Assembly: GCF_006345805.1 (NCBI RefSeq)
Contig: NC_043013.1
Coordinates: 15,128,001-15,192,000, forward strand
Direction: 5' to 3'
DNA length: 64,000 bases
Origin: Octopus sinensis
Lineage: Eukaryota
In this document: piece after piece, positions 5,145-63,498 of the stretch
How the letters are laid out: each line of letters starts with the position of its first letter
How positions within the stretch are numbered: position 1 is the first letter of the stretch
Position numbers and translations under genes: made by a program
Notes under the pieces: model-generated
Told to the model about the DNA's origin: nothing
The model's input: the letters and a program-made list of their open reading frames with translations, nothing else
The model's database searches: none

Positions 5145-8100
5145 TATAGATATATATATATATATATATACATATATATGTAAGTGTGTGTGTGTGTGTA
5201 TATGTTTTTCCCCCACATCGCTTAACAACCAATGCTGGTGTGTTTACGTCCCCGTAACTTAGTGGTTTGGCAAAAGAGACTGATAGAATAAGTACTAGGC
5301 TTACAAAGAATAAGGCGGCGCTCCAGCATGGCCACAGTCAAATGACTGAAACAAGTAAAAGAGTAAAGAGTAAGGTTGTGAAACAACCATGATCCTATGG
5401 AAGTCAGGTGGTTAAATAAATATATATGTTCATCTCTCATTATCTCCTGACTTAATGGTTTTACACACACATGCATCAACTTTAGAGTCCTTTGGAACTG
5501 GGTTCAAATCACGATTTTGTGTTTTTAATTTTTTACTTATTTGACAAAGGAAATACTAGTGGTTGTTACTGTTTAGCTCTGATGAAGCCCTGAACTGAGA
5601 AAACATGTGATCAAACATATCCCAATCATTCCATCTTATTTCCAACATAGGGTTCTCCAGATTACATCTGCCAATATGTCTTTTTTTGTTCTTAAAACCT
5701 CAGGAGCTCTTTCAAGCCAAAGAAATGACAACTATTGCAAGAAATATCAGCCAAATCTCCATCAAATCACATCTTATCAATAAAAACGAAGGAAAAACTC
5801 TTTGGATAAATGTAGTCCTGGATATACTGTGCATAAAATAAGATGAAATTATCATGGCTAAATGACTCTGAACACAGGTCTGCTTGGTCAAGGTTGACCT
5901 GGAGTTAAACAAATACAACAGGATTTACTGTCGTTGTTTAGTCCCAATCAATTTTGATCAAGCAGATCTATGCTTTAGGCCATTCCAACTTCGACCATCC
6001 TGCTTTTAAAGGGGTATGTACTTTTCTGGGTATGTGATGTTTTAGCATCATTGATTCAACACTAACTTATTTAGACGTTTTAATGACTCTCTTGCTCTTT
6101 CCCCACCTCTCTCTCTCTGTTTATGTGTGTGAGTATATATCTCTTTATGCATATGAGGAGAAGGAAAGTGTTTATGTCAGTCCCATGCAAAATTCTGGGC
6201 ATCCAAACAGCTGTCCCATTTGACTTATTCCAACATTTTCTCAAGTGCCCATTCCTTATTTAAATTTATAGGATGAGATTTGGGGGAAATTTGGCTGCTA
6301 TTTCTAACAGATTGAGTGGCCCCTTTAAAGGCACAACTAAGAATGAAGATGAGAAACAGAGAGCAAAGCAAACATGGGAGATAATTGTGTTACCAAAAAA
6401 GGATACTTGGTAATAAAATCAAAAAGTAGGTAAATATTGAATAAAGGAGACCGGCAGAAAACATCCCAGCATAAACAGGGTTCGGCCATCTGAGAAAACA
6501 AAGGGACAAAATAATATTAACCATTTTGTTATTAATATATTTCTGTTGAAATATACTGGGTTAATTTCGATTAATTTTAAAAATAAAGTCTAATTTACTA
6601 AAACAGACGTCGTTATGTTGCTGGTGTTTTTGAACAATAAATTAACTTGAAATTTTGATGGAAAGTTATAATTTAGATAAATTTTAAAACAAGGACCAAA
6701 ACTGGTCACAGGCAGGCTAGTATCAAAAAGGTTAAAGAACAATAAAAAGAAAAAACACATTGAAATAAGTACTGACAAGGTGATAGCACACTCACACACA
6801 CGAACACATCACTGCCACCACCACCAACATGCTCCTCATCCTTTTAATGTCCACTTCCCCATGCTTCCATGGCTCAGATAGATTTTGATGAAGCAGATTT
6901 TCTATGACCAGATGCCCTTCCTGCCACACCATTTACCTGTTTCAAGCAAGGTAATATTTCCCCATGGTCAGAAATGTTTTTTTAAGAAGTTTGCAAAGGC
7001 ACAGCTCTGCTTGAATGGCAAGGGTACTCATTTACAATCAGCATATAATATCAAAACAAGGGTACAGACAAATACAGACACACACACACAATGCCCATTT
7101 CTTCCTCTTCCAGTCCTTTCAGCATGTGGTGACCATTCAATTTAGGCACACTTATTCTTTTCTCTTTATTTTTCTCTCCCCTCATCTACCCTTTCTGTAG
7201 AAGAGAACAGGCTCAAAGCATTAAAGACTTCTCCCAATTTTCTTGAGCATTAATCATAACACACCCAGTTTGTTTTGTTTTTTTTACACCTCTGCCAGTT
7301 CATTGCCTTAACCCTTTAGCATTCAAATTAAATTGCATTACAATTCTTATTTACTGACTTAGTTTTGAATTAATCAGCCATAATCTTGTACCTTTGAGAT
7401 TTTGATGATGAGATTGTATATTTTTTGAATGACATTCATTTTACCACAGGTGTGAGAAACCCAATCTAGTTGGTTTGAACAGGAAATAGGTAGAATATTT
7501 TGGCTGGTTTAAATACTAAAGGATTAAATATGAGACATAATATCGACTTACTTGCATACATGATTCATTCTGTGTGAATGTTTCCTGAGAAGAAATAGAA
7601 AGTAGAGGAGAGCAAAGATGGCAACAGCGCCTTGGTACTGGTCTCCCGTCATATGTGCAATAACAAGCATACTGGTATAGACAAGGCAGGGCTGTAGTAG
7701 TTGAAGCCACCAGATAAACAATGGACTTGGAGGTTTCTGGTTGCTGTTTTTTGAAGACATATATGACAGGAGAGACACCAGCTGTTTATGGCTGCAAATG
7801 GAGAAAGAATGGAGATAGATTCTGGTGAAATATATGTGATGATTTAAAAGAGAAAGAGAAAGAGAGAATCGACAAACATCATCATCATCATTTAATGTCT
7901 GTTTTCCATGCTGGCATGGGTTGGATGGCTTGACAGGAACTGGTAAGGCCAGGGGCTGTACCAGGTTCCATAGACTGTTTTGGCCTGGTTTCTACAGCTG
8001 GATTCCCTTCCTAATGCCAAACACTCCTCAGAATGTATTGGGTGCTTTTTACACAGCACCAAGACCAGTGCTTTATACATGGCACCAGCGCTATTGCTTT

Positions 8101-8897
8101 TTATGTGGCACCTTAGTTTTAGGATCTTAATTCAATTGACAAACATTCAGTTACATAAATGTCTACTGACTTGTGTTGCAGATGAGGAGTATTATGATGA
8201 AGTATTTGATATGGAAAGACACACAGTATAAGGTAGGGCTAGATGCATTGGCTGAAAAACTAAGACAAGATGGTCATGGATGGAATGCCTTTGATGAAAG
8301 GGGCTGCTTCATTAAAACTAAACAAGAATTTTTTTTTTTTTTTTTTTTAGTTTTAATGGATACACTTGCAGCAGAGAAACTAAGATGATATGGTCGTGGA
8401 TGGAATGCCTTTGATGAAAAAGACTGCTTTGTTAAAACTAAACAACAAAAAAGAAAAATTAAGCTTACTCGTTCTTTTTTTTTGGATTTTGAAGAACCAG
8501 GTCTAGTGGCGTCATATTCTGTTTGTTTTTCATGCGTAACAGACTACAATCCCCAACATTCAACAAAATCCAAGAAATATGGCTAAAACCTTCCTTTGCA
8601 GTTAGGTGTAGCACTGTATTTCCGTCGACATCTTTCTGGAACACATCAGAACGCTGTGGACAAACAAACAAGTCGTTAGTAATACGTCAAATACATTTAT
8701 TATAAAGATAAATATAGAATATATAACAGAGTTCAAGTGATAATATATATGTAGGCGTGGCTGAGTGGTAAGAAGCTTGCTTCCCAACCACATGGTTCTG
8801 GGTTCAGTCCCACTGCATGGCACCTTGGGCAAGTGTCCTTGGGTCGACCAAAGCCTTGTGAGTGGATATGGGGGTCAGAAACTGAAAGAAGCCCATC

Positions 8898-12100: not shown

Positions 12101-15100
12101 CAGTGCTTAACAGGCACTTATTTTATCAACTGAGTAAGGACGGAAGATAAAGTTGGCCCTGCTGAGATTTTGACTCAGTATGTAAATGTAAATAAATACT
12201 GTAAAGCATTATTTTTACTGTCATTCCACAGATTCAGCAATTCTACTGCCCTTAAAATGGTAAAAAACAAACAATATGTATATATGTAAAAAAAAGCATT
12301 AGAAAAACCTGATTTTTGGTGAGATACTTCAAAGCTTCTAAGTGACCCATTTGACAGACAATATGGAGTGGAGTCTGGAGGTTGTTGTCCATTGATTGAA
12401 GACTCAAATTATGGACGCTGTTGAGGTAATGGAGAACACACCTACAAGAGAGAGAGCAAAGAAAACCCAGTAACAACAAGGTCAGCTCAATAAAGGTTAA
12501 CACAGGGCTAAACAACATTATATTTGATCTGTAAGCACCTATCCAACTGCTAAACTAAAGAAACATGTATGCATGAATATGTGGATGGATGGAATAAGAA
12601 AAATACATATATGTCCTATTGTATTGCCTGTGCCAGTGGCACATGACCTGCTGTGCTTGAGGAGACCTATTGAGTCAAGTACATCAACATCAAAATAAAT
12701 ATCAAATGGAAATTGTAGATGTGATACCTGTGCCGATGGCACTGAAAAGCACCATCTGAACGTGGCCGATGCCAGCGCTGCCTTGGCTGGCTTCTGTGCC
12801 GGTAGCACGTAAAAAGCACCAACCGATCGTTGCCGCTGCCAGCCTCCCCTGGCACCTGTGCCAGTGGCACATAAAAGGCACCCACTACACTCACGGAGTG
12901 ATTGGCGTTAGGAAGAGCATCCAGCTGTAGAAACACTGCCAGATCAGACTGGAGCCTGGTGCAGCCTTCTGGCTTCCCAGACCCCGGTCGAACCGTCCAA
13001 CCCGTGTTAGCACGGAAAATGGACATTAAATGATGATGATGATATAGCCTGCTTTTTAGAAAAGATACACTGCATACTTGAATGTAATAAGAAGATACTA
13101 GACTGTCAACAACCCAGTCTACTGAGCTGTATGTAGGTACTATACGTGACATATTTCACTAGAAGAAGTGGAAGAGTTTATGCTCCAGTATAACCAGACA
13201 GTGGTCAGAACAAGGCATGAGAGTCAAGCAATAGTGGATGATGGACATCATATACACATTAGTCACCACTGCCTGACCTTTCAGGGATAGCTTTCTCTCA
13301 GCCCATTTCTAGGTGAAAGTAGTCACCCCACTCATTACCTCATCCCAGTTTTTGTCCATCTGGAGGTCAAGACCGAGCCAGACCCTGAGCAATTTAACGG
13401 TCTGTCCGTCCAGCATCCAACAACACAGTGAGATGGCATGCACTTGCTTCTCCAGGTGCTGATCCGCAAGCCCACTGATTTTTCCTGGTTGATCGTCACT
13501 CCTGAAACCACCTCATAGTCTCTGAGAGCAGGGTCGATCATTTCTATGTGTTTATGATCTAACACCACTATGGTGACATCATCAGCACATGCCAACACGC
13601 ATCTCCCACACCTTAGGTCACATGGGATACCCCTCAATGCCTCCAGTTTGTGTAGTAGTGGCTCAAGAGTCAGTACATACAAGAGAGACGAGAGGGGGCA
13701 ACCTTATCGGACCAAGCGCATGATGTTGAACGGTTCTAAGAGGTGACTGTTCACTCTGACCACTGATGTGCATTGCAGTGATCCAGCCCTTCAATACAGG
13801 TCCAAAACTAGCTATCTTGAGGTATAAATGGTTGACCCTATCGAAAGCTTTAGACTGATCTAAATTGATCAGGGCCCCACCCATGCCAGGTTCTTTAGCC
13901 ACTTTCTCAATGATGTATTGCATGAGGTAGGGGTTATTATGGATGGATCTTTTCATGATGACGTATGTCTCTGTCTCCCCTACCAGATCCCTGATGACAA
14001 GCACCAATGTTGTAGCTAACACCTTGGCCAAAATTTTGAACCCTGCATTTAACAGTTGTCAATACAATATCCCTTGTTTGGGTCTTTCTTCAGCAACACC
14101 ACTGCTCCTTGGTTCACAAAACTGGGAATTCTCTCATTCTGTTGCTGGTTACAGTAAATGCTAAGAGGTCGCCAAAAAAATCTGGCATGTAAATGTAAAG
14201 CTCATAGGGTAGACCATCTAAACCAGGCAATTTACCCCTCAATGGTTTCAAATTTTAGCACAAGGCCAGCAATTTCAGGGAGAGAATAAGTCAATTTCAT
14301 CAACCCCAGTGTTCAACTGGTACTTATTTTATCGAACGGATGAAAGGCAAAGTTGACCTCAGTGGAATTTGAACTCAGAATAATAATAATCCTTTCTACT
14401 AAAGGCACAAGGCCTGAATTGTTGGGGGAGGGGACTAGTCGATTACATCAACACCAGTGGTTTACTGGTACTTAATTTATTGACCCCAAGAGGATGAAAG
14501 GCAAAGTTGACCTCAGAATAATAATAATAATAATAATAATAATACAGTATTATAAGTGCAATAAAAAACAAAAATTTCATACGCACACACTTCCACTTTG
14601 TGCAGCATGGTGCACAACTGAACGTCCTTGCTTGTCTGTTAGCTGGATGTCTGCATTATGTTGTAACATTAGGTGTACATTGGACGCAATTCCACGACGG
14701 CACACATAGTGCAGAGGTGTTTCATCGAAGTCATTACACATGTTTGGGTCAGCACCTGCCTCCAAAAGTAGGTAGATTATAGTCCAGTCACCTCCAAGAG
14801 ATGCCTTGTGCAATGGTGTCTGAGAATGCCAACCTGGAAACAGAACAAAAAAGTGAAAATTTTAATCATTGTTCAAAAAATAAATTATGATGAATACAAG
14901 GATATGGAAATGACAAAGACCGAGACCCCTGAGATATGCTGTGACTGTGAAGACCCAACAAATGAAGTGAGGCCTGCTGTGCTAACCTTTGATCATAGAG
15001 TGTCCCGCTGTTCTCGAGGAGACCTATTGAGTCAAATACGTCAACACCAACATCAAAATAAAAATCAAATGGAAATTGTAGTTAAGACACCCGTGCCGGT

Positions 15101-19090: not shown

Positions 19091-22000
19091 CACAAAGGGC
19101 AGTTATTAAACTGTCATCTAAATTATGAAAATAACAGACATCTCATTTTAACAGATCAGATATAGTTAGCAAAATTACATAAAAATATCTTGAAATCTTG
19201 AAATACTAAAGAGTAAATTTATTCAATAAAATTGCCATTGGCTTCAACAACCGCCTCCGGACAATTTCAGAATCTTCTGCAACTCTTCTGGATGGTCTCC
19301 TTGTTTAAGCTGGTGAATGCTGCCATAATCCTTGCTTTCAGTTCATCATTTGGTGTTACAAGGAGTTTTGTTGATCTCTCACTCAACTGCACTCCATACA
19401 TAATAATCAAGGGAGTTGCAGTCAGGAGAGTTAAGTGGCCAGATGTTAGGGGTGATGTGGTCGCAGAAATTATCTGACAAACATGACTGGATTCTCCTGC
19501 TTGTGTGGCATGGTGCATAGTCCTGTTGCCAGACGTAGGGTCTTCCAGCAGCCCTCCTTTTGACCCAGGACAGCACGACCTCCTCCAGGCCCTTGATGGA
19601 GGCCTCCATGTTGAGTGTGAGGCCATGTGAGAAGATGAATGTAGGCATAACATAGCCATCACTATCATTATTGGTACATATCCTCCTCATCATTATGAAA
19701 ATTTAACATCATCACCTCCACTCCTTCCTCTCCAATTATTATTAACATTATCACTGTCATCTACACCACAACCTCCTCTTCATCATCACTATCAACATTA
19801 TCATTCTTATCACACACGTCTTCGTCTTCATCATTACAAACATTACAAACTATCACTCTCACCCCACTACCACCTCTTCTTCATCATCATTATCAACATT
19901 ATTACTGACAGCCCCATGCTAAAACCTCTTCCACTCCTTATCAACATTATCGCTGTCATCACCAATGCCCTTTCCTCCTCTTCATTACTATTGTAATCAA
20001 GCAGACATTAATAAAATGATGAAGAGGCATAATGGTATATATGTGTAATATTCCAATATCCTTTGAGTAAAATCCAAAAGTCCAACAGAGTTTAATATGA
20101 GTCCATCCAAATGTAAAGTTTATAAGCAATGTAAGATTCTACTGGGAATGACCAACTTTAAGAGAATCTTACATTATTATAAGCTTTACATTCGGATGGA
20201 TTCATATTAAACTCTGTTGGACTTTTGGATTTTACTCAAAGGATATTGGAATAATACACATAAAATGATGAAGACAAAAATGGTTTGGTTCAATCCCTCT
20301 TTTATCAAGAATGTGCTACGAGAAGAGTTTAAGTGTACTCCTACTAAATCAACCACCAGTGGAGGAGTACAAGTGTTGTCAGTTTAATTTAACCACCAGC
20401 ATGGACATGCAGATGCGGTCATCCCTAGTAGGAGTGTACGAGTGTGGTTACCTTAAGCTGACTATTTGCAGGAGAGTTCAAGAGCAACAAGTGAGTTGAC
20501 CCCTAGCAGAACAGTAGAAGAGTGACCACTTGTGAGAGAGTACAAGCATAACCACTCTAAGTTACTACTAGTGCGAGAGTGCAAGAGTGACCACTCTAAG
20601 TTGCCTCTAGTGGGAGAGTGCAAGAGTGACCACTCTAAGTTGCCTCTAGTGGGAGAGTACAAGAGTGCCCATTCTAAGTTGCCTCTAGTGGGAGAGTACA
20701 AGAGTGACCACTTTAAGTTGCTACATGTGGGAGAATGAAAGAGTGCCCGTTCTAAGTTGCTACTAATGGGAGAGTGCAAGAGTGACCACTCTAAGTTGCC
20801 TCTAGTGGGAGAGCACCAGATTGACCACTCTAAGTTTCCGGGGGTGGGAGAGTGAAAGAGTGCCCACTCTAAGTTGCCACTAGTGGGAGAGTACAAGAGT
20901 AGCCACTCTAAGTTGCCTCTGGTGAGAGTACAAGAGTGGCCACTCCAAGTTGACTACTTGCAGGAGAGTACATAAGTGGTCATCCCAAGATGATCACTAC
21001 CAAGATAGTAGAAGAGTGGGCATTCCAGTTAACCAGGAGAATGCAATGGTGCACCCCTCCCAGCTACCAAGCTTACCAGTAGCAGGAAAGTAGGATGTTT
21101 TAATAGAACCATAACCATGGTGATCAGATAATGCAGTTGGTTACATCTGTAAACTCATCAAACTCAGTTAATGAGTAGAAGTTGCTTACTTCCTCCAGCT
21201 TTCCCTTTGCTCTGGTTCATGTCATACGAACCATCCAAAGAAAAATAAATAAATAAATTCCACTGCTAAACAATAGCAGTCTGTCCACTTTAGTGTCCAT
21301 TCTTCCATCTATTCCGGAAATTAATCAATAATTTCATTATCTCGGGGGAAATCAAGGAAAAGATCATAAAGTATTTATATGACCTTTTAATATTTGGACA
21401 ACATGCGAAAGTTTCTTTGTATTAGTTTACAACTTTCACTTACTGGACTCTGGCCATGCTGGAGCATCCACCTTGTATTTATGTTGGCATTACCTTAGAC
21501 GAGCTGAACCAGCTCCAACTCGTGAATCTAAAGTATCGCAAACAAAAGCAAAAGCTGATAGTGTTTGGCAATCACAGACGTCCGATATGGAGATCATCAA
21601 CCAGTTGTGACTTCTTATGGTAGATACCATATTACCATATAAATTAAAGACCAGATATTGATTTAAGGTCCCACTTGATCGTCTAAGGCAGCATTTTCCT
21701 GCCTTTGTATTCTTGGGGAACCCTTGAAATTCATTCCATGTCTAAGGGATCCTCCACTCAAAAATTACTATATGTCATTATTAATCTTTTTATTTACCTT
21801 TCATAAAAGTAAATTTCATAAGAGATTGATACTTTTGATATACTAACCCACATGAGACTACCAATGGATCTACAGTATAAATTAGTCAAATTATCATTAT
21901 TTCTGAGGGAACCCATAGTGACAACTTATAGAAAGTGGGTATTCCAGGGAAGGGACACTGATCTCAAGTCTAGTTGATTCCATTACATAAACTCCAGTAA

Positions 22001-38900: not shown

Positions 38901-41900
38901 ATGGGTTGGTCTTATCATCATCATCGTTTAACGTCTGATTTCCATGCTAGCACGGGTTGGACGATTTTGACTGAGGGCTGGCAAACCAGATGGCTGCACC
39001 AGGCTCTAATCTTGATCTGGCAGAGTTTCTACAGCTGGATGTCCTTCCTAACTCCAAGATTGTAGTGGGTGCTTTTTACATGCCACCGGAACGGGGTCCA
39101 GTCGGGTGGTACTGGCAATGACCTTGCTCGAATCTTTTTACACGTGCCATCAGCACAGGTGCCAGTGAAGCGACGTTGGTAACGATCACGCTCGAATAGT
39201 GCCCTTTTACATGCCACGGGTACGGAAGCCAGTTGGCTGCTCTGGCAACGATCACGCTCGGATGGTGCTCTTGGCACCCTACTAGCACAGGCATAAGTGC
39301 CAGTAAGGCAACGCTGGTAACGATCATACTCGAATAGCTGCTCTGTCAACGATCAGCGGCTCTGGTTTGGAATACTCTTAACCAAACATAGGCCTTCTCA
39401 AAATCGGCAAATCATCATCTGGAACTAAATTAAATTACAAAAATTCAGTTGGCTGGTGTGTTGGGCAGTCGTAAGCCACAATTAATATATTTCTTTAATT
39501 TGTTTCAGTTTTTGGACTATACCATCCTGGGGTACTTCTTTCATTTCTTTCTCTTTATCTCTCTCTCTCTCTCTCTCTCTCTGTAAACCTTCATTTTTAG
39601 TGCATGGTTCTTTCTACAACTCTCACTCTCTCTCACCCCACCCGCCACCCCCAACAAGCCAACCTCTATGTGTGCTCTCACCTTGCAAGAAATAGCAGCC
39701 AAATCTTCTTGAAATCATAGCCTGTTTTAAGAGAAGATGAACGCTTTAGTTAATGTAACCCTGAATATATACACCACGTGTGTAATGTTTGAATAATGAT
39801 AATAAAAAAAAATAGGATGGTCACAGCTGGAAGTGTCTTTGATCCTAAGTCTCTCTTCCTGCTCTATCTGGGCTCACTTGGGGGTTAAACAGCAGCAACA
39901 ACTCTACAGTCTCTGCAAAATGAAACTGTGGAACAGATTGCTAAGACTGTTTGATTTGGAGCAACATTGAAAAATGACGTATAATAATCTATGATGAGGA
40001 AGAGTAGGAGAAGGGATGATGATGAGGAGAAGTGGTGGTGATGATGCTGGGTGATGGGTGGTGCTATATATCAGGTATGCATGTAGTGGAGAGCTGGCAG
40101 AAACGTTAGCACGCCAGGCGAAATGCTTAGCGGTATTTCGTCTGCCGTTGCGTTCTGAGTTCAAATTCCGTCGAGGTCAACTTTGCCTTTCATCCTTTCG
40201 GGGTTGATTAAATAAGTAACAGTTACGCACTGGGGTCAATATCATCATCATCGTTTAGCGTCCGTTTTCCATGCTAGCATGGGTTGGATATAATCGACTT
40301 AATCTGTTTGTTTGTCCTCTCTGTGTTTAGCCCCTTGTGGGTAGTAAAGAAATAGGCATGCATGTAGTGGGAGCTACTCTACTGGACTTTGTCATGTGTT
40401 CCTTTTCTTTGTTTTCTGTAGATGGAATGGATTTGAGTGAGGAGAAACCAGAATGTGATCTCATTAGCAACGACAGTCCGAAGAACAAAGGCTGCAAACA
40501 GAAACGAAAACGCAACAGCAGCTCCGAAGCCAAGGAACCGAGCCGACCAATTAAACAGCGGAAGTTGGAACCGTTGTGTGGGGAAAACACCGATGAAGCA
40601 AACATCAAGTTCGAAGGTCAAGCAGAAGAAGGTGCCAAGTCAGAAGACGAAGATCGAGGTTCTGGTAGTTGGAAGAAGAAGAAAAAGAAGAAACGACATC
40701 GGTCGGATAGTTTCAGCAAACTTTCCAATGATGTTTTTCCTGAGAAGTGTAAGCTCCAACGTCGGTCTAGCAGCAACTCAAAACTAAGTGATATCGAACC
40801 GGCTGATAGACTGGCTCAAAAATCAGAGACTGATTTAAAATCATCGAACGAACAGGAATCAGGTGAGACCGCGACACAGGAAAAAAAGACTCCTCATGAA
40901 ACTGAATCACGGTTAGAAAACTTATCTGCAGACGAAGGAATCGATTCTGCTGCTAAAGATGCTAAAAGGTCTAAAAGGAAACGGAAAAAAGACAGCGTGG
41001 ATAGTACAACTAGTAGTGATCTGGAGAATGTGCCAAAACGTATAAAATATGACATAACTGAAGAAAACAATATGCAACGGGATCATTCTCAAGATTGTAA
41101 TAAGAAACGGCGCCATAAGAATCGTAAGCGATCCAAACCACTTCCACACTTGCGGGTCATCTCCAAGTGAGTTGTAGTTCTTTGTTTTTATTTCTTTCTT
41201 TTTTGTATCATGCATCTTCCTGATAGACATTGGTGCAATTATGTTTTTTTTTTTCTCTATACCTCTAATACTGATCATCTCTGAATCTTATCAACTGAGC
41301 TGAAAAACTTTTTGTAGAGGAGATCTGAATAAGACAGAAACATGTCTTATTTTCATCAGTTTGCTTTACTGACCAGATCTACTTTTGATTGCAATGTGGC
41401 TATTTGCCCAGAATTTTGGATTAGATCAGTAGTACTCAACCATTTTTTATCTGTGGACCCCTTTGATTATTGTTCTACTCTTGTGGATCCCTACAGCCAT
41501 TCGATGTTTAAAAACTAGTTTTATAGATACTTCTTTCAAAATTCCTGTTTTGTTTATCACATATTCATTTGTGTTGATAGAACTATTTAAAATGTCAGAA
41601 AAAGAAACCTAGCTTTTATTTGCAATAAATACATCTAAAACAAGATTTTTTCATGGATCCATAAAATACTATTGTGAACCCAATTTAATATTTTTCTTGT
41701 GTGGACCCATGAAAATCTTATATGGATCACAAGGGATCATATGGACCCCAGTGAGAACCACTAAATTAGCTGATTATAGTTTGTTTTATAAAGTCATTTC
41801 ACCTTGTTTTGAGATTTCAGATTTCAAATTGTCTTCTAATTGTAAGAATAATCTCACTTATTTGAAGCTTTTCAACTCCCTCTATTACATATGTGAAATT

Positions 41901-56700: not shown

Positions 56701-59700
56701 TCTTGGTGCCAATGATGTTCCGCCTATTCTCAGAAATGAGTTGCATCTTGGGAAGATCAGAAATAACCTAGTGTTAACTAAATCATATTTTAAAATGTAT
56801 CATCAGATTATTGTGTTATTTTTTTTTTGTTTCTTTTATATTCAGATGCATGTAAAGATTTATAAATTTCCTTATTAGTATTTTTATTTTTCTGTTTGCG
56901 TAGATGTAAATATTAAAACGTTTTCCATCTCTAAAAGACGAGGTTAATAGTTTGAAAAATTATAGTCATAAAATATATATATATATATATTTTGCATAGG
57001 ACGTGCATTACAGTGTGTTAATAATCAACGTGATAGATAAGAGAAGCGTAGTGTTCTAATGATACCAGAGCAAGACCCAAAATGTTAAATGCTCGTTAGC
57101 GTTAGTTCGTTTAGAACCTATCCTTCTGAATGACTGATATTGAAACAATATATTCTTCAAAAAATCTTTCATAAATGCCTACTAATGAGTCATAGTTGAT
57201 GTAAGGGATGAAAAAAAAAACTCTTAAAAAATTCACTTTCAATAATGACTAATGGTTGACTAGAAATGACACCATGATTGAAATGTTTGATGAATAAAAT
57301 TTATATTTAATCCAAAAGATGTTATTTTCAATTAAAAACAAAAATGGGAATTTTTTTGTTTGTTGTTTGCTAAATATCAAGTGTATGAATTAAGTTGGTG
57401 TAATACTAAGGTGATTATAAAACATTAGCTATTATTGCAAGTTTTAGCATTGACGTTTAGGACACATGAAACAGTTTCCTTGTTGTAGACATTCCAAAGA
57501 GATTTATAAAAAAAAAAAAAACAACAAAAAACAAAAACACCATGAAGTCTAAATGCTGAGAAGATAACTTCAGGTGTCTTTAATAAGTGATTGTCTTACC
57601 ACTGGGAGAGAAGTGGGGAGAAAGAATATATAAATTAATAATAAATGTAGCCCAAGAAAATGATCTGTAAACCACAAGCTGGTGTCATCAGATAAGTGCT
57701 TGATTATAAATGGGCACAATTGTTGTTGAATAGTCCTGCTCTCAGCCATGATGCATGAAGGAGGTTAAAACATGTCCCTAGTTCATTCTTGCTTTCCTTT
57801 TTAATATTTTCAGTTCTCATTATATATATAAAACTGACTTCTTTAAATTTGTATATCAGGAAATGTGAAAGGTAAGAGAAACAAAATAAAATATACATTG
57901 ACATAACTGTCATTCCAATTGATGGTAACAGAAGCCTAAATATGGTGCAGCAGTTCAAAAAGAAAAAAAAAAAATGGTTGAACCACAAATGGTCGATTTG
58001 AAGCATTGTAAATGTTGTTACCATAGCAATATTGTGTGGTCCCAGTCAATAGAAGAGATCCCTAGAAGTTGGTACCAACTGCAGGTTATACGAGATTACA
58101 CGAGTAGTTCCAAAGACTTCTCATTCCAAACCCAGTCAGCTCCATCTTTTGGAATAATTCTATTTCATCATCCCAAATGGATGCAAAAAACAAAAAAAAT
58201 GTCGGCAAATTTCATCTTATTTTGTTTCTTTTTTTTTTTTATGTTTCCCCACTTCTAAATATATCTTTTATAAGTTGTATTAATAAAAGCTGAACAAGTG
58301 TGTAAAAGTGTAAAATTATAGTTAAAAAAAAAACAAAAAAAAAACTTTTCCATTTTTCAGTTAAAATTTTCTAGTGTTCATTAAATACTAATTGATTAAT
58401 TAATTTAAAAAAATTAAAATCTTGCTTGTTATTATTATTATCATTATTATTATAAGAGTTCACAGACTGGCAGTCTAAATGAATTGAGTTGTATAAAGTA
58501 TCTCTGAGCATCATACATGATCATACAGCATCATACACAACAGATAATTATAATAATAAAAATAATAATATTGGTTTTCCTCCCCGGGCAGTGTGTAGCT
58601 TAAAGAGAATTGTCTTGAGAGAGAGAGAGAGAGAAAGAGAAAAAAAAAGGGTATATTTTCTTTTCTTTCTTTTTTTGTTTTTTTTTATAATCAGCACAGC
58701 AATGGCACCAACACCATTCCATATTTCAATATTCAACTCCTCCAGCTGTAGGTAGGAATGATAGGCAAGACATTCGGAAAGATCTACTGCAAAGTTACAT
58801 GGATAAATACAATTAGCAGATTGATAGCATATACAGGTGAGGTAACATAAAAAAAATTTTTCAATAAGAAATATGTCAAGTTTAAAAAATACAATAGTCT
58901 TAAGAGGAATTGAGTTCAGGAACTTTCAGAAGTATTAAAACAACATAGCCCTCAAGTAAATAATAATAATAATAGTATCTTAATAAATGATAATTGTCAT
59001 AAAGTTATGATAATAATGAATGTAAAATGCCCTATTGTCTAAAATGAAATATCACCAATGTCCTTAACACAAGCGAAGCCTTAGTCATGAATACATTCAA
59101 TTAATTTCATGTACCTTATTGTATATATTTGTTTGTTTGTGTGTGTGTGTGTACACGCACATATATATACATTATAGAATGTGACATGCAGAACTATCTC
59201 ACTGTGCATGTTTGCACGTGTGTATGTATGTATGTATGTATGAGTATGTGTGTGTGCATATGTGTGAGTGAAAGCATATATATGTTAGTTTTATATTCGG
59301 GAAGAAGGTCCTTTATCCAGTAGTACATGCTTTTGGTAGTAGTGGTATATAGTAGTGGTAGTAGTAGAAGTAGTAGTAGCAGTAGTAGCTAGCTGGGTGG
59401 TGGAGCTACATCTGAAATCATAGTCATGCATACACAGTAACAACCAAAGTAGTTGTAGTTCAGAATAAAAAAAAAAAAAAGGAACTACCAAAAATAAATG
59501 AAAAAAAAAAATAAAAGAGGAGGATTTTGGGAGATCTTTTTATCAACTTGAAGCTGAAATAACCAAGAAAGTGGGAATAAGGATAAAAGTTTGTTTATGG
59601 TTTTGTCTTCTTTTTTTTCTTCTTTCTTTTTTTAATTATTATTATTATCGTTATTATGATTCATACTGAATAAAAAACTGATATCTATGAAGTAGAACTA

Positions 59701-59713
59701 GTTTTGATTCCAA

Positions 59714-59850
59714 TCATTTGTTGCTTTCCTCACTATCAGCCGTTCCCTCTGAAGTAGCCTCAGTGCTGTCCTTCACACCGTTCCACTGCTCAGCTTGCAA
59801 GGCATTATTTGGAGACACAGTTGTCTCTTTCTCTGTCGCTGCCTCTGATT
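59714..59850 (-). CDS. Terminal coding exon of the same unidentified gene
   Basis: ttctctttcag|AA TCA ... AAC AAA TGA. The phase-1 acceptor matches the 62853 donor. Reads ESEAATEKETTVSPNNALQAEQWNGVKDSTEATSEGTADSEESNK*. GC-richer island in AT-rich surroundings. Confidence 0.78.
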
Positions 59851-60333
59851 CTGAAAGAGAAGATAACAGCAATACAAGTTGAAAGTAAATTTCATTGGTC
59901 GACTCCCTAATGAAAAACGCTAACTCAGGAGAGAAAACTAGTAGCTTTCTTTCTTTTTTTTTTTTGTTTTTTTTTTAAGGTTGGGAAGAGGGAGGGAGGA
60001 GGTGGCAGGGGAGGGAAACGAGTTAAACAACTATGTTGTTAGTTTATTATTATTATTATATATATATACACATATATATAATGTTAATAGAAAAAAATCT
60101 GAGTGAAGATATATCAATTTGCCTAATAGTAGTAATGTTAAACTATAATAATGATAATAATAATAATAAATATTAATAGTGGGCTATGTACAGTTAACAT
60201 TCAGAGAGTTCCTGTCCTCAACACCTTACAACAAAAACTGTTTGTTTTTTGTAGTTTTGTTTGTTTGTTTGTTAGTTGGTCGTTTTTTTGTTTGTTTCCA
60301 AAATAAAAAAAAAAATGAAAAGAAAAAAAGTAA

Positions 60334-61439
60334 TCAGGTTTTTTCAAAATAATCCCCCTCACAATCTATACAAGTTTTCATTCTTTTAAACCAATTTGAA
60401 AAACACTGAGTCCATTCAAAATTGGACAGTTGAGACATTTGGTTAACCAGTGCCTGGACAGCTTCTTCAGGGCTCTCAAATCGAATGCCCCTCAGCTTTT
60501 CTTTCACTTTGGAGAACAAAAAATAATCACAAGGTGACAGATCAGGGCTAGAGCCAGGGTGAGAGATTATCTGCACGTGGTTTTCAGCTAGCAAGTCGAG
60601 TGTTGCTGCAGCAGTATTGATACGAGTGTCATCATGGTGGAGGAGAATGCCCCGGAGACCAGAGTCTGGGCGCTTCAATTTGATTGCTTCAAACAACTGG
60701 GGTAAACACTTGGTCACGTACCACTGTGCACTGACTATTTCCCTGTCTGTCAAAGACGTGGTCACTAAATAACCACTTCTTTGGAAATAAGTTGCCATCA
60801 TTGTTTTCCCAACACTTCGAGGCCTTTTCAGTTTTAAAGGCGGGTCTTCATCTGGAAAGACCCATACAGAAGCCTGCCGTTTTGTTTCAGGTTCATATTG
60901 ATAAAGCCAAATCTGGTCTTCTACAACAATATCCCAGACCTTAGGAGAACCTCCATTTTCAAATTTTTTCAGCATATAATGACACCATTCCACTCGAGCC
61001 TGCTTTTGCATTTCATTAAGAGTTTGTGGAATCCAACAGCAACTATGCTGTTTTAAATGCATATGATTCTGTAGAATCCATTTGACATTTCCTGATCCAA
61101 TGCTTAAGGTACCTTCTATTTCTTTAGGTGTCAATCTTTTATCACTATTCAACATTGCCTCTATAACTTCAATATTTTCAGCGAGTATTGAAGTGTTTGG
61201 GCGGCTAGTTCTTTGGTCATCTTCCAGATCTTCTTTACCACGTCTAAATTCTCCAAACCAGAATTTAACTGTACTGTAAGAGGGACTTAAATCCTGAAAT
61301 AATCGATACAAAATTTCATGACTGTCAGCTGCACTTTTCCCTTTCGAGTAATGCAGGAACATCATGGCTCGAAAATTTCTTCTCTGCAGTTTCATGGTGA
61401 ATACTGAAAGATTAGTCTGCTGCTTAACTTTGTCAAGCT
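60334..61439 (-). CDS. Intact mariner-family (DD34D) transposase ORF, probably an alternative terminal exon of the host gene
   Basis: 353-aa ORF 60334-61395 with HTH region, WIPQTL linker, VVEDQIW.YEPETKRQ, LLHHD and SPDLSPCDYFLF; 34 residues lie between the 2nd and 3rd Asp. Preceded by ttctcatttcag|AG at 61439 and 14 further open codons in frame. Confidence 0.85.
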
Positions 61440-62777
61440 CTGAAATGAGAATGAAGAATGAGAGAAGGCTGAAAGCTCAGCTTGTCTTATAGACAATAAC
61501 GACAATTTAGGAACAGTAAAGATTTGACAAGGTGTTGAATTGAGGAACTGTCTGATGGTGATTTCTTGAAGCATTCTTCCTTTTCTTTTTTTTTTTTATT
61601 TTCTGGGGGGAAGGGGGAATTATAGAAGAGAGATAGAGAGAGAGAGAAAGAGAGAGACAGAAAGAAAGAGAGAGAAAAAACAAAGAAATCAATATAAAGT
61701 GAAGTACTTTGTCATTGTTATCTGAAAGCAGCAAAACAAAAAGAACAAAACCAAAAAAAGGTGCATGACATGACAAATGTACAAGAAACCAAAACCAAAA
61801 ACAACATCAGCTCCTTAAAACTAATAAAACATTATAGAAATAATGACTTCAATAGGTTGGCTTTTATTTATTGTTCTGTTTGGCTGAAGAAGAAAGGGCA
61901 GCACCCATAATCTTCACAGACTCTTACAGACTGGAGAGAGAGAAATGCTGTTGATGATCAGTAAGAACTTGTATAAGGTGGATATTTGTTAAAAACAAAT
62001 CTGGAGAGAAAATACTGGGTTTACTACAGTGTTTGCAAGTGAGAGAGAGAGACAGTGATAGCAGGGAAGGAGGAGCAGAAGAGAGGTAGAGAGGTGGTGC
62101 ACTAGTGGTACACAGCCTGCTAATTTAAAGAGAGAGCGAGAGAGAGAGAGAGCAAGTGTATTTGAATGTGTGGCCCTAGTGATCATGCAGTGTTGAACCT
62201 AGTTGTATAAAAACAACATAGGTATGTATTAGTTAAGAACTGATGATGAAATAGTATTTAGTTCAAGGAAGGAAGTTAGTTGAGTAAACAGTAAACTTGC
62301 AATGTTAATTAAAATGGGAAAAAACTTGAGTTACACCTGGAGACAAGGTATTTCATCATAAATTAAAACAACAAAAAACACAAAATGTTTTATTTTGAAA
62401 CAATTAAGATATTTTCAATTGCATGATTTCTGTAAGGAGAGAGAGAGAGAGAAAGAGAGAGAGAATCAACTATTTGGTTGTGTCAGAGTTCAACCATGGT
62501 TGAATAACAACAACAAAATAATAAGTAGTAGGTTTGATTGTTATACTACCTTAAAATGGAGAGCCACACTTAGCACTGACAAACATTTTGCCCACAGTCA
62601 AATCATCTCAAATCTAACCTTGTATCAGACATATAAGGTAAGGTGATCATGCATTTTAGAGAGAAAATACAGTTTTAATGGATAGGGTGTCTTTTTAAAA
62701 ATCAGAATGGAACACAGAAATGAATGAGAAAAAGAGGCCCTTCTTCCCCAGCAGGGTCCGTGTGACTAACAACCTAC

Positions 62778-62852: not shown

Positions 62853-63498
62853 CTGAAGTGGCTGGATTATCAGGTTTGGTTTCTGGAGCTTCAGAAGCAG
62901 CAGAAACAGGAGGAGCAGTGGTAGGGGTGTCTGTAGTGGTGGTGGTGGTGGTGGTGGCAGCGGCGGTAGTGGTAGTGGTGGCGGTAGTGATGGCAGTGGT
63001 AGAAGTGACAGCAGTGGTGGCAGTGGTTGGGGTAGTGGTGGTGATGGCAGCAGTAGCAGCAGCAGTAGTAGTAGGAGTAGTAGTAGTAGTAGGAGTAGTA
63101 GTAGGAGTAGTAGTATCAACAGTAGTAGAAGTGGTTGTAGTAGTAGTAGTGGTGGAGGAAGCTGAAAGGGCAGGAGCTGGCGATGATGAAGGAGGGGGTG
63201 GAGTAGGTGTCTTCTCACTGGTGGCTGTCGTCTCCTCACTGTCCCCACTGACAGTAGTAGCTTCAGGGGCAATATTCTCTAACAGAGCAGGGGCGGGAGC
63301 AGAGGCAGGAGCGGGAGTAGCAACACTAGAAGGACTGCTATCAGGAGGTACTTCTGTTGTCTGAGGTGGCTTTTCTTCACTGACAGCTTCTTTTTCAGGA
63401 ACTGTAGTCTCTGTGGCAACTGGTTCTGCTGGTGGGGCTACTGCTGCTGCTGGTGGGGCTATTGCTGCTGCTGCTGCTGGGGCTACTGCTGCTTTCTC
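62853..63498 (-). CDS. Internal exon of an unidentified gene (Pro/Ala/Thr/Glu-rich low-complexity region); upstream exons lie outside the window
   Basis: tttgatttacag|GAG AAA ... ACT TCA G|gtaggt. 646 nt (215 codons + 1), open; phase-1 donor. Confidence 0.8.

Follow-up and report, generated by a model that had tools for sequence, protein, structure and literature searches.

The question raised by this locus is how a transposase reading frame can have stayed intact in an octopus genome, and what it has been kept for. On the minus strand of a 64,000-nucleotide stretch of Octopus sinensis contig NC_043013.1 (positions 15,128,001 to 15,192,000, assembly GCF_006345805.1; hereafter the window), positions 60334-61395 hold an uninterrupted open reading frame (ORF) of 353 amino acids, by far the longest in the window. 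We consider it likely that incirrate octopods have here a domesticated mariner DD34D transposase gene, immobilised and kept by selection in the host. A preliminary description of the same DNA had arrived at domestication from the intact frame, three aspartates with an exact spacing of 34, altered motifs beside them, the absence of terminal inverted repeats (TIRs) and the T/A-rich sequence directly after the stop codon. All of these observations were borne out, and orthologues, dN/dS and the lack of TIRs now support the reading drawn from them. What had escaped notice there is that the frame probably lies in an intron of the chromatin remodelling gene SMARCE1 (BAF57), from which it might be used as a fusion exon.

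Fold and catalytic signature alike identify the protein as a mariner DD34D transposase. A sequence search against solved structures matched it to the Mos1 transposase over residues 9-351 (E=1.5e-32), and the next matches were the transposase and DNA-binding domains of SETMAR, residues 1-103 aligning with the SETMAR DNA-binding domain 7s03 at E=1.6e-9. Pfam HTH_48 was recognised at residues 5-54 (38.9 bits, cut-off 24.1), and Transposase_1 scored 22.5, just below its cut-off of 24. An AlphaFold2 model built from a 29-sequence alignment had a mean predicted local distance difference test (pLDDT) score of 83.9 and showed a paired N-terminal helix-turn-helix (HTH) of six helices at residues 5-111. 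In Foldseek searches this model matched full-length Mos1 with E=9e-23, and its catalytic domain superposed on those of Mos1 and SETMAR with template modelling (TM) scores of 0.90-0.91 and root-mean-square deviations of 2.2-2.9 Å. The ORF can be divided into HTH1/HTH2 (approximately codons 1-115) and an RNase-H-like domain (approximately 120-353). Alignment with Mos1 placed the catalytic aspartates at D160 (60916-60918), D255 (60631-60633) and D290 (60526-60528), the latter two being 35 residues apart, which is the D34D spacing. In overall sequence the octopod protein is about equally distant from Mos1 and from Hsmar1/SETMAR.

Intact, syntenic orthologues were found in three further octopods. 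The best database match is an Octopus bimaculoides protein that is 99% identical and carries the RefSeq name SETMAR-like, and the 90% cluster of the protein contains this sequence, a 353-amino acid protein from a third Octopus species and a 1243-amino acid protein from Argonauta hians. In all four taxa, counting the O. sinensis window, the ORF is exactly 1062 nt long with no indel or stop. Chromosome CM046617.1 of O. bimaculoides is collinear with the window; the flanks are ~93% identical with many indels, whereas the ORF is 98.96% identical with 0 indels, its differences being 8 synonymous and 3 non-synonymous. The third Octopus species is represented by Logan contigs of sequencing runs (~92% identity, 1.9 kb of collinear sequence), which are unspliced, bounded by microsatellites and look genomic. 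The gene order of A. hians is the same as in the window, with the HMG-box gene SMARCE1 upstream, then the transposase, and a La/RRM gene downstream on the opposite strand; these neighbours were seen in every taxon where flanks were available. O. bimaculoides has one annotated copy, on one contig, and no paralogue of 53-90% identity was found among annotated or predicted proteins. Within the window there was no second copy of this family of mariners, and seven other long ORFs in it had no Pfam match.

Sequence comparison between these orthologues points to selection for the protein. The ratio of non-synonymous to synonymous substitution (dN/dS, omega) was 0.09-0.18 among the Octopus species, and between Octopus and Argonauta dN was 0.044 and dS 0.70-0.76, for an omega of 0.06. 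Calculated per domain, as the preliminary description had proposed, omega for the latter comparison was far below 1 in the HTH (0.059) and the catalytic part (0.057) alike. Over the whole ORF, 104 third-position differences were counted and only 32 amino acid differences; the synonymous divergence, together with so few amino acid changes and no indels, argues for selection on the encoded protein. Repeats aside, Octopus and Argonauta could be aligned in this region over a 2.4-kb block containing the ORF (61778-59401), a short adjoining piece and part of a low-complexity exon, and the intron DNA outside the aligned pieces was largely unalignable.

The protein database contains approximately 40 relatives with 40-53% identity, including one from the sponge Oopsacas minuta; many of them are exactly 353 amino acids long, on contigs 1.2-1.9 kb in size. 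The octopod protein is 47-59% diverged from every other known member of the family, and in a representative search it formed a separate 50%-identity cluster in what is a very large superfamily. Two relatives, one metagenomic (L006) and the other that of O. minuta (L008), are complete elements of ~1.31 kb with 32-nt TIRs, which begin TACGAGGGTCA, contain AAAAGTTTTG and are separated from the ORF by ~185 nt on the ATG side and ~65 nt on the stop side. The untranslated regions (UTRs) and TIRs of the family gave no alignment to either flank of the octopod ORF, and the TIR core had no match in the window or at the orthologous octopod loci, so that TIRs were not recognisable even by comparison with those of the closest multi-copy-type relatives. 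The only inverted repeat bracketing the ORF (60300-60328 with 61574-61602, 29 nt, 90% complementary) spans 1303 bp, a mariner-like distance. It was rejected as a pair of relic TIRs because it consists of poly-A/poly-T without TA flanks and is unlike the family TIRs. Both of its tracts vary in length between species, and the same repeat list contains dozens of similar inverted pairs between unrelated A/T tracts.

The surroundings of the ORF are those of SMARCE1. In the Argonauta gene model (P0043, the 1243-amino acid protein above) the N-terminal 366 residues match human SMARCE1/BAF57 (6lth_Q, E=1e-88), and beyond this core follow Thr/Ala/Pro-rich exons. The last of these low-complexity exons (62853-63498, minus strand) is open in both the window and Argonauta; its start (EK) and end are the same in O. 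bimaculoides, where the exon is interrupted by an assembly gap of N letters (L001 ~7900-8170, CM046617.1) and the frame is open both before and after it. The run of N is probably the reason why the O. bimaculoides SMARCE1 model is truncated at 552 amino acids and lacks the last exons. The exon ends at position 62853 in a strong phase-1 donor (CAG/GTAGGT) that is conserved in Argonauta. The octopod SMARCE1 was also seen to carry a very long Thr/Ala/Pro-rich, low-complexity C-terminal extension, of several hundred residues in the Argonauta model, in which exon length varies between species and the frame stays open.

On the other side of the transposase, positions 59714-59850 (minus strand) probably form the canonical terminal exon of SMARCE1, judging from their conservation. 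This candidate exon has a phase-1 acceptor (ttctctttcag) and 44 acidic, Ser/Thr-rich codons (E-SEAATEK...SEESNK), and ends in a TGA at 59716-59714. Acceptor, frame and TGA are conserved in Argonauta, where the sole indel is an in-frame 12-nt deletion, and the flanking intron and 3'UTR sequence (59640-59960) is 92-100% conserved between Octopus and Argonauta. When donor 62853 was joined computationally to the acceptor at 59850, the frame was continuous. The exon is contained in a partly conserved stretch 3' of the transposase stop codon (59401-60333, minus strand), which is T-rich after the stop and has an AATAAA 286 nt past it. If 59714-59850 is the terminal exon, the transposase ORF would stand in sense inside the last SMARCE1 intron. 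We picture its origin as follows: in a common ancestor of Octopus and Argonauta, a ~1.31-kb mariner with 32-nt TIRs of the TACGAGGGTCA... type would have entered the last SMARCE1/BAF57 intron in sense orientation, its TIRs would then have been lost, and the whole 353-amino acid protein would have been under strong purifying selection since.

This location suggests two ways in which the protein could be delivered. In the first, the phase-1 donor at 62853 would be spliced to a phase-1 acceptor at 61440/61439, giving an in-frame BAF57-transposase fusion. The candidate 3' splice site (61440-61500, minus strand) consists of the tract ccttctctcattcttcattctcatttcag, an AG at 61441-61440 and conserved upstream intron sequence; neither tract nor AG differs among the three Octopus species and Argonauta, and the site is in phase 1, 44 nt before the ATG. 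The 44 nt in between (61396-61439, minus strand) are open in the transposase frame, encoding E-LDKVKQQTNLSVFT-M, and are identical in the three Octopus species, with Argonauta differing at 3 positions. The computed join of 62853 to 61439 is in frame and reads ...PDNPATS-E-LDKVKQQTNLSVFT-MKLQRR..., the predicted fusion peptide spanning ...PDNPATSELDKVKQQTNLSVFTMK. Donor 62853, acceptor 61440/61439 and the terminal exon acceptor at 59850 are all in phase 1 and conserved in Argonauta. The locus thus has the layout of a fusion-type gene, in which a same-strand transposase exon within a host gene is preceded by an in-frame acceptor.

The 61440 acceptor is used in the Argonauta model, in which SMARCE1 is joined to the transposase by way of a 15-nt micro-exon whose splice sites are good. 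The A. hians annotation was produced by a pipeline combining ab initio prediction, RNA-seq and homology, with four RNA-seq libraries (PMC12682272), and the fusion model may have transcript support. The candidate micro-exon ATAACAATGACAAA (61708-61721, minus strand; conserved acceptor gctgctttcag, donor GTAC) is 15 nt long in Argonauta, where it encodes DKNDK (L005 44192-44206), and 14 nt long before the GT in the three Octopus species. That the transposase exon is an alternative 3' terminal exon of SMARCE1 is, in our estimate, a possibility falling a little short of an even chance. Several points weigh against it. The 14-nt micro-exon of Octopus, if included, shifts the frame and leads to a TGA overlapping the transposase ATG (ATGA), support for the fusion comes from one automated gene model, and the RefSeq model of O. 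bimaculoides is a stand-alone product of 353 amino acids. The phase match (chance 1 in 3) and the 14 open codons (chance ~0.5) are weak evidence. All three differences between Octopus and Argonauta in the linker are non-synonymous and none is at a third position, which suggests constraint at the level of the nucleotides and not of the peptide. Finally, the terminal SMARCE1 exon is itself deduced from conservation only: no annotated protein in the database includes it, and its one counterpart is an unspliced genomic ORF in Logan.

The second way would be a nested gene: the ORF, inside the intron, would be translated from its own, well-placed ATG. Taken strictly, this explanation holds that the gene has its own intronic promoter and the ancestral ATG and was never joined to SMARCE1, so that the Argonauta fusion would be a merge made by the prediction. 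The RefSeq stand-alone product and a linker free of signs of peptide-level constraint agree with it, and in each of the four taxa the ATG has stayed in its ancestral place, with an A at -3 (CACCATGA in the window; CACCATGA / CAGCATGA among the taxa). The ~250 nt upstream of the ATG, which are strongly conserved, could serve as promoter or 5'UTR. It does not, however, account for a textbook polypyrimidine-AG acceptor 44 nt before the ATG that is identical in Octopus and Argonauta and phase-matched to the donor, and a 15-nt micro-exon would be unusual for a purely ab initio prediction, in an annotation whose pipeline used RNA-seq. The 5' leader in Octopus would moreover contain an upstream ATG with a 60-codon upstream ORF. 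Weighing these points, we hold a nested gene that was never fused to be nearly, though not quite, as probable as its negation. A fusion and a stand-alone nested gene are compatible with each other. The upstream ORF (61392-61574, minus strand) is intact in Octopus and ends in a TGA that shares letters with the transposase ATG (ATGA). The idea that it is a conserved coding element was rejected, since indels in Argonauta (+3, -5, +1) break its frame.

A highly conserved stretch of ~300 nt (61201-61500, minus strand) takes in the acceptor, the start codon and codons 1-65 of the transposase. From 105 nt before the ATG through codon 65, Octopus and Argonauta are 92-95% identical, compared with 85% in the rest of the coding sequence. 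Synonymous sites are constrained here, with third-position differences at 7 of codons 1-65 vs 97 of the 288 codons elsewhere (p=1.4e-4). No conserved overlapping ORF was found in 61201-61500, and RNA folding of the conserved 5' stretch was not significant (z=-1.5), covariation being powerless because the four sequences are very similar. Regulated alternative exons typically show strong conservation close to the exon. The conserved 300 nt would fit a splicing switch, which is not proof of one. A fusion would tether the DNA-binding domain of the transposase to the BAF chromatin remodeller. We put forward, tentatively and as the less probable side of the question, that the conserved stretch is such a switch and that regulated use of the alternative exon gives octopods a BAF57-transposase fusion protein, which would be a built-in, sequence-specific DNA-binding, and possibly DNA-cleaving, module of the BAF complex aimed at dispersed transposon-derived sites.

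To judge what the protein could still do, its residues were compared with those of 25 close relatives that have kept the appearance of mobile elements. These relatives read TGDE(T/S)W, HHDNAxxH and HPPYSPDLAPCDFFLF, where the window ORF has IVVEDQIW, HHDDTRIN and HPGSSPDLSPCDYFLF, and the octopod orthologues read VEDQIW, HHDDTRIN and HP(G/D)(S/F)SPDLSPCDYFLF. The linker motif is WIPQTL in octopods vs WVPHxL in the family. The changes at VEDQ, HDDTRIN and SPDL that the preliminary description had listed are thus real, and they stand out more sharply against these 25 sequences. At least 92% of the relatives, or all of them, share the family residue at the altered positions of the near-catalytic and subunit-communication motifs, and E161, N256, A257, H260 and Y282 are invariant. 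Of the 96 family columns conserved to at least 92%, the octopod protein retains 74, while 18 carry a replacement in each of the four octopod sequences. Ten of the 49 invariant columns are replaced (G64S, H109Q, E161Q, S175A, F203Y, N256D, A257T, H260N, Y282S/F and P295S). Replacements were more common near the catalytic aspartates, affecting 7 of 17 conserved columns within 5 residues vs 11 of 76 elsewhere (Fisher p=0.019; p 0.008-0.03 at other radii), and in the HTH just 2 of 13 conserved columns were changed. Octopus and Argonauta share the replacements beside the aspartates, which are fixed.

The WVPHEL and YSPDL motifs of mariners couple the two subunits during cleavage, as known from Mos1 and Hsmar1. 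From the absence of TIRs, the replacement of invariant residues near the aspartates and the alteration of the WVPHEL- and YSPDL-type motifs, we infer that ordinary cut-and-paste transposition has been lost; neither TIRs with a TA duplication nor conserved communication motifs, the marks of a mobile element, are present at the octopod locus. A point that weighs against this reading is that all three catalytic aspartates are intact, the loss of transposition being deduced from changes at other residues. It could accordingly be argued that the protein is still an active DNA-cleaving enzyme serving a host DNA transaction, and more than a DNA-binding module; the candidates would be programmed cleavage at relics resembling TIRs and, in line with proposals for SETMAR/Metnase, DNA-end processing or repair. 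The complete and confidently predicted fold, the exact spacing of the three aspartates and the equal constraint on the catalytic domain and the HTH (0.057 vs 0.059) agree with such an activity, and the fixation of the replacements beside the aspartates in both Octopus and Argonauta suggests a pocket that was reshaped and not one that decayed. However, with 77-80% of conserved positions kept, retention of three aspartates out of three is expected about half of the time and is therefore not evidence of retained catalysis; E161Q, N256D, A257T, H260N and Y282S/F replace residues invariant in all 25 relatives, and the WVPHxL motif is altered. We regard an active enzyme of this kind as unlikely.

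For the domesticated protein itself, the most likely role would be that of a sequence-specific DNA-binding module acting through its paired HTH. The RNase-H-like domain would still be needed, because it is as constrained as the HTH, and may have been kept for dimerisation, for binding of DNA ends or for a modified nuclease activity.

Two further explanations of the intact frame fare poorly. The conservation could serve intronic or 3'UTR regulatory RNA or DNA of SMARCE1, with the open frame incidental, and the strongly conserved non-coding sequence around the ORF and the synonymous-site constraint in codons 1-65 would suit this; the ORF-wide dS of ~0.7, the predominance of third-position over amino acid differences and the absence of indels from 1062 nt between indel-rich flanks make it very improbable. 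Still less credible is an ordinary young or still-mobile mariner copy whose ORF is intact through youth, as its full-length ORF with a DDD triad might suggest, given that it occupies the same locus in lineages dS ~0.7 apart, has no TIRs and is 47-59% diverged from the rest of its family.

Domesticated mariner transposases in which both domains are intact are, to our knowledge, few, the studied cases being SETMAR and KRABINER. SETMAR/Metnase of anthropoid primates, a fusion of SET and Hsmar1, resembles the octopod gene in that a full-length mariner transposase, including both its HTH and its catalytic domain, is domesticated, immobile and under purifying selection; its catalytic domain has a TM score of 0.91 to the octopod model. 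It differs in its triad, which is DDN as opposed to the octopod DDD, and the octopod changes fall instead beside the aspartates and in the WVPHEL- and YSPDL-type motifs. The octopod gene was rejected as an orthologue of SETMAR, as its RefSeq name would imply: no SET domain is encoded at the locus, where SMARCE1 stands upstream, the protein is only ~22-24% identical to the transposase domain of SETMAR, and the triad is DDD.

KRABINER (ZNF112-Mlmar1) of vespertilionid bats originated from a mariner situated in the last intron of ZNF112, by use of a splice acceptor a short way before the transposase ORF (Cosby et al., 10.1101/2020.05.07.082677). The octopod locus is similar in that a sense mariner would occupy the last intron of a host regulatory gene whose parental terminal exon is still present. 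The partner, however, is an HMG-box BAF subunit, SMARCE1, and not a KRAB zinc-finger gene, the octopod event is much older (dS ~0.7 between carriers), and the fusion is here one predicted by a gene model. A fusion in octopods would also need no frame-restoring deletion, unlike KRABINER, because the acceptor is already in frame. With regard to a transposon origin of this acceptor, the 5'UTRs of the family gave no alignment to the octopod sequence.

The active mariners of the family (O. minuta L008 and metagenomic L006, with Mos1 as structural reference) share with the octopod protein a length of 353 amino acids, two HTHs, a WVPHxL-type linker, DD34D and the fold. They differ from it as elements of ~1.31 kb with 32-nt TIRs and the motifs TGDETW, HHDNAxxH and HPPYSPDLAPCDFFLF, whereas the octopod gene has no TIRs, occupies one syntenic locus and has 10 of 49 invariant residues replaced.

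In the literature searched, we found no description of a cephalopod domesticated mariner with both domains, and one survey of transposon-derived transcription factors that included Octopus did not cover this gene. The octopod domesticated mariner has apparently not been described so far. It is an old case, common to Octopus and Argonauta at dS ~0.7, and offers a natural experiment on the uses for which a transposase fold is retained after transposition is lost. Cephalopods are noted for genome reorganisation and transposon activity. If the fusion is true, it would be an octopod-specific way of wiring the BAF remodeller to the genome, and the hypothesis that chromatin remodelling is targeted in a lineage-specific manner in cephalopods becomes directly testable at this locus.

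Elsewhere in the window, 13335-14031 and 19267-19668 (both minus strand) hold short fragments of ORFs that appear by eye to be broken retroelement or transposase remnants (for example ...SKAFDRVNH...), with no Pfam match at E<=0.01. Positions 40337-41170 (plus strand) hold a 277-amino acid ORF, likewise without a Pfam match, which is rich in Lys, Ser and Glu, runs in the direction of the La/RRM (LARP7- or La-like) gene next to it and may form a large exon of this gene.

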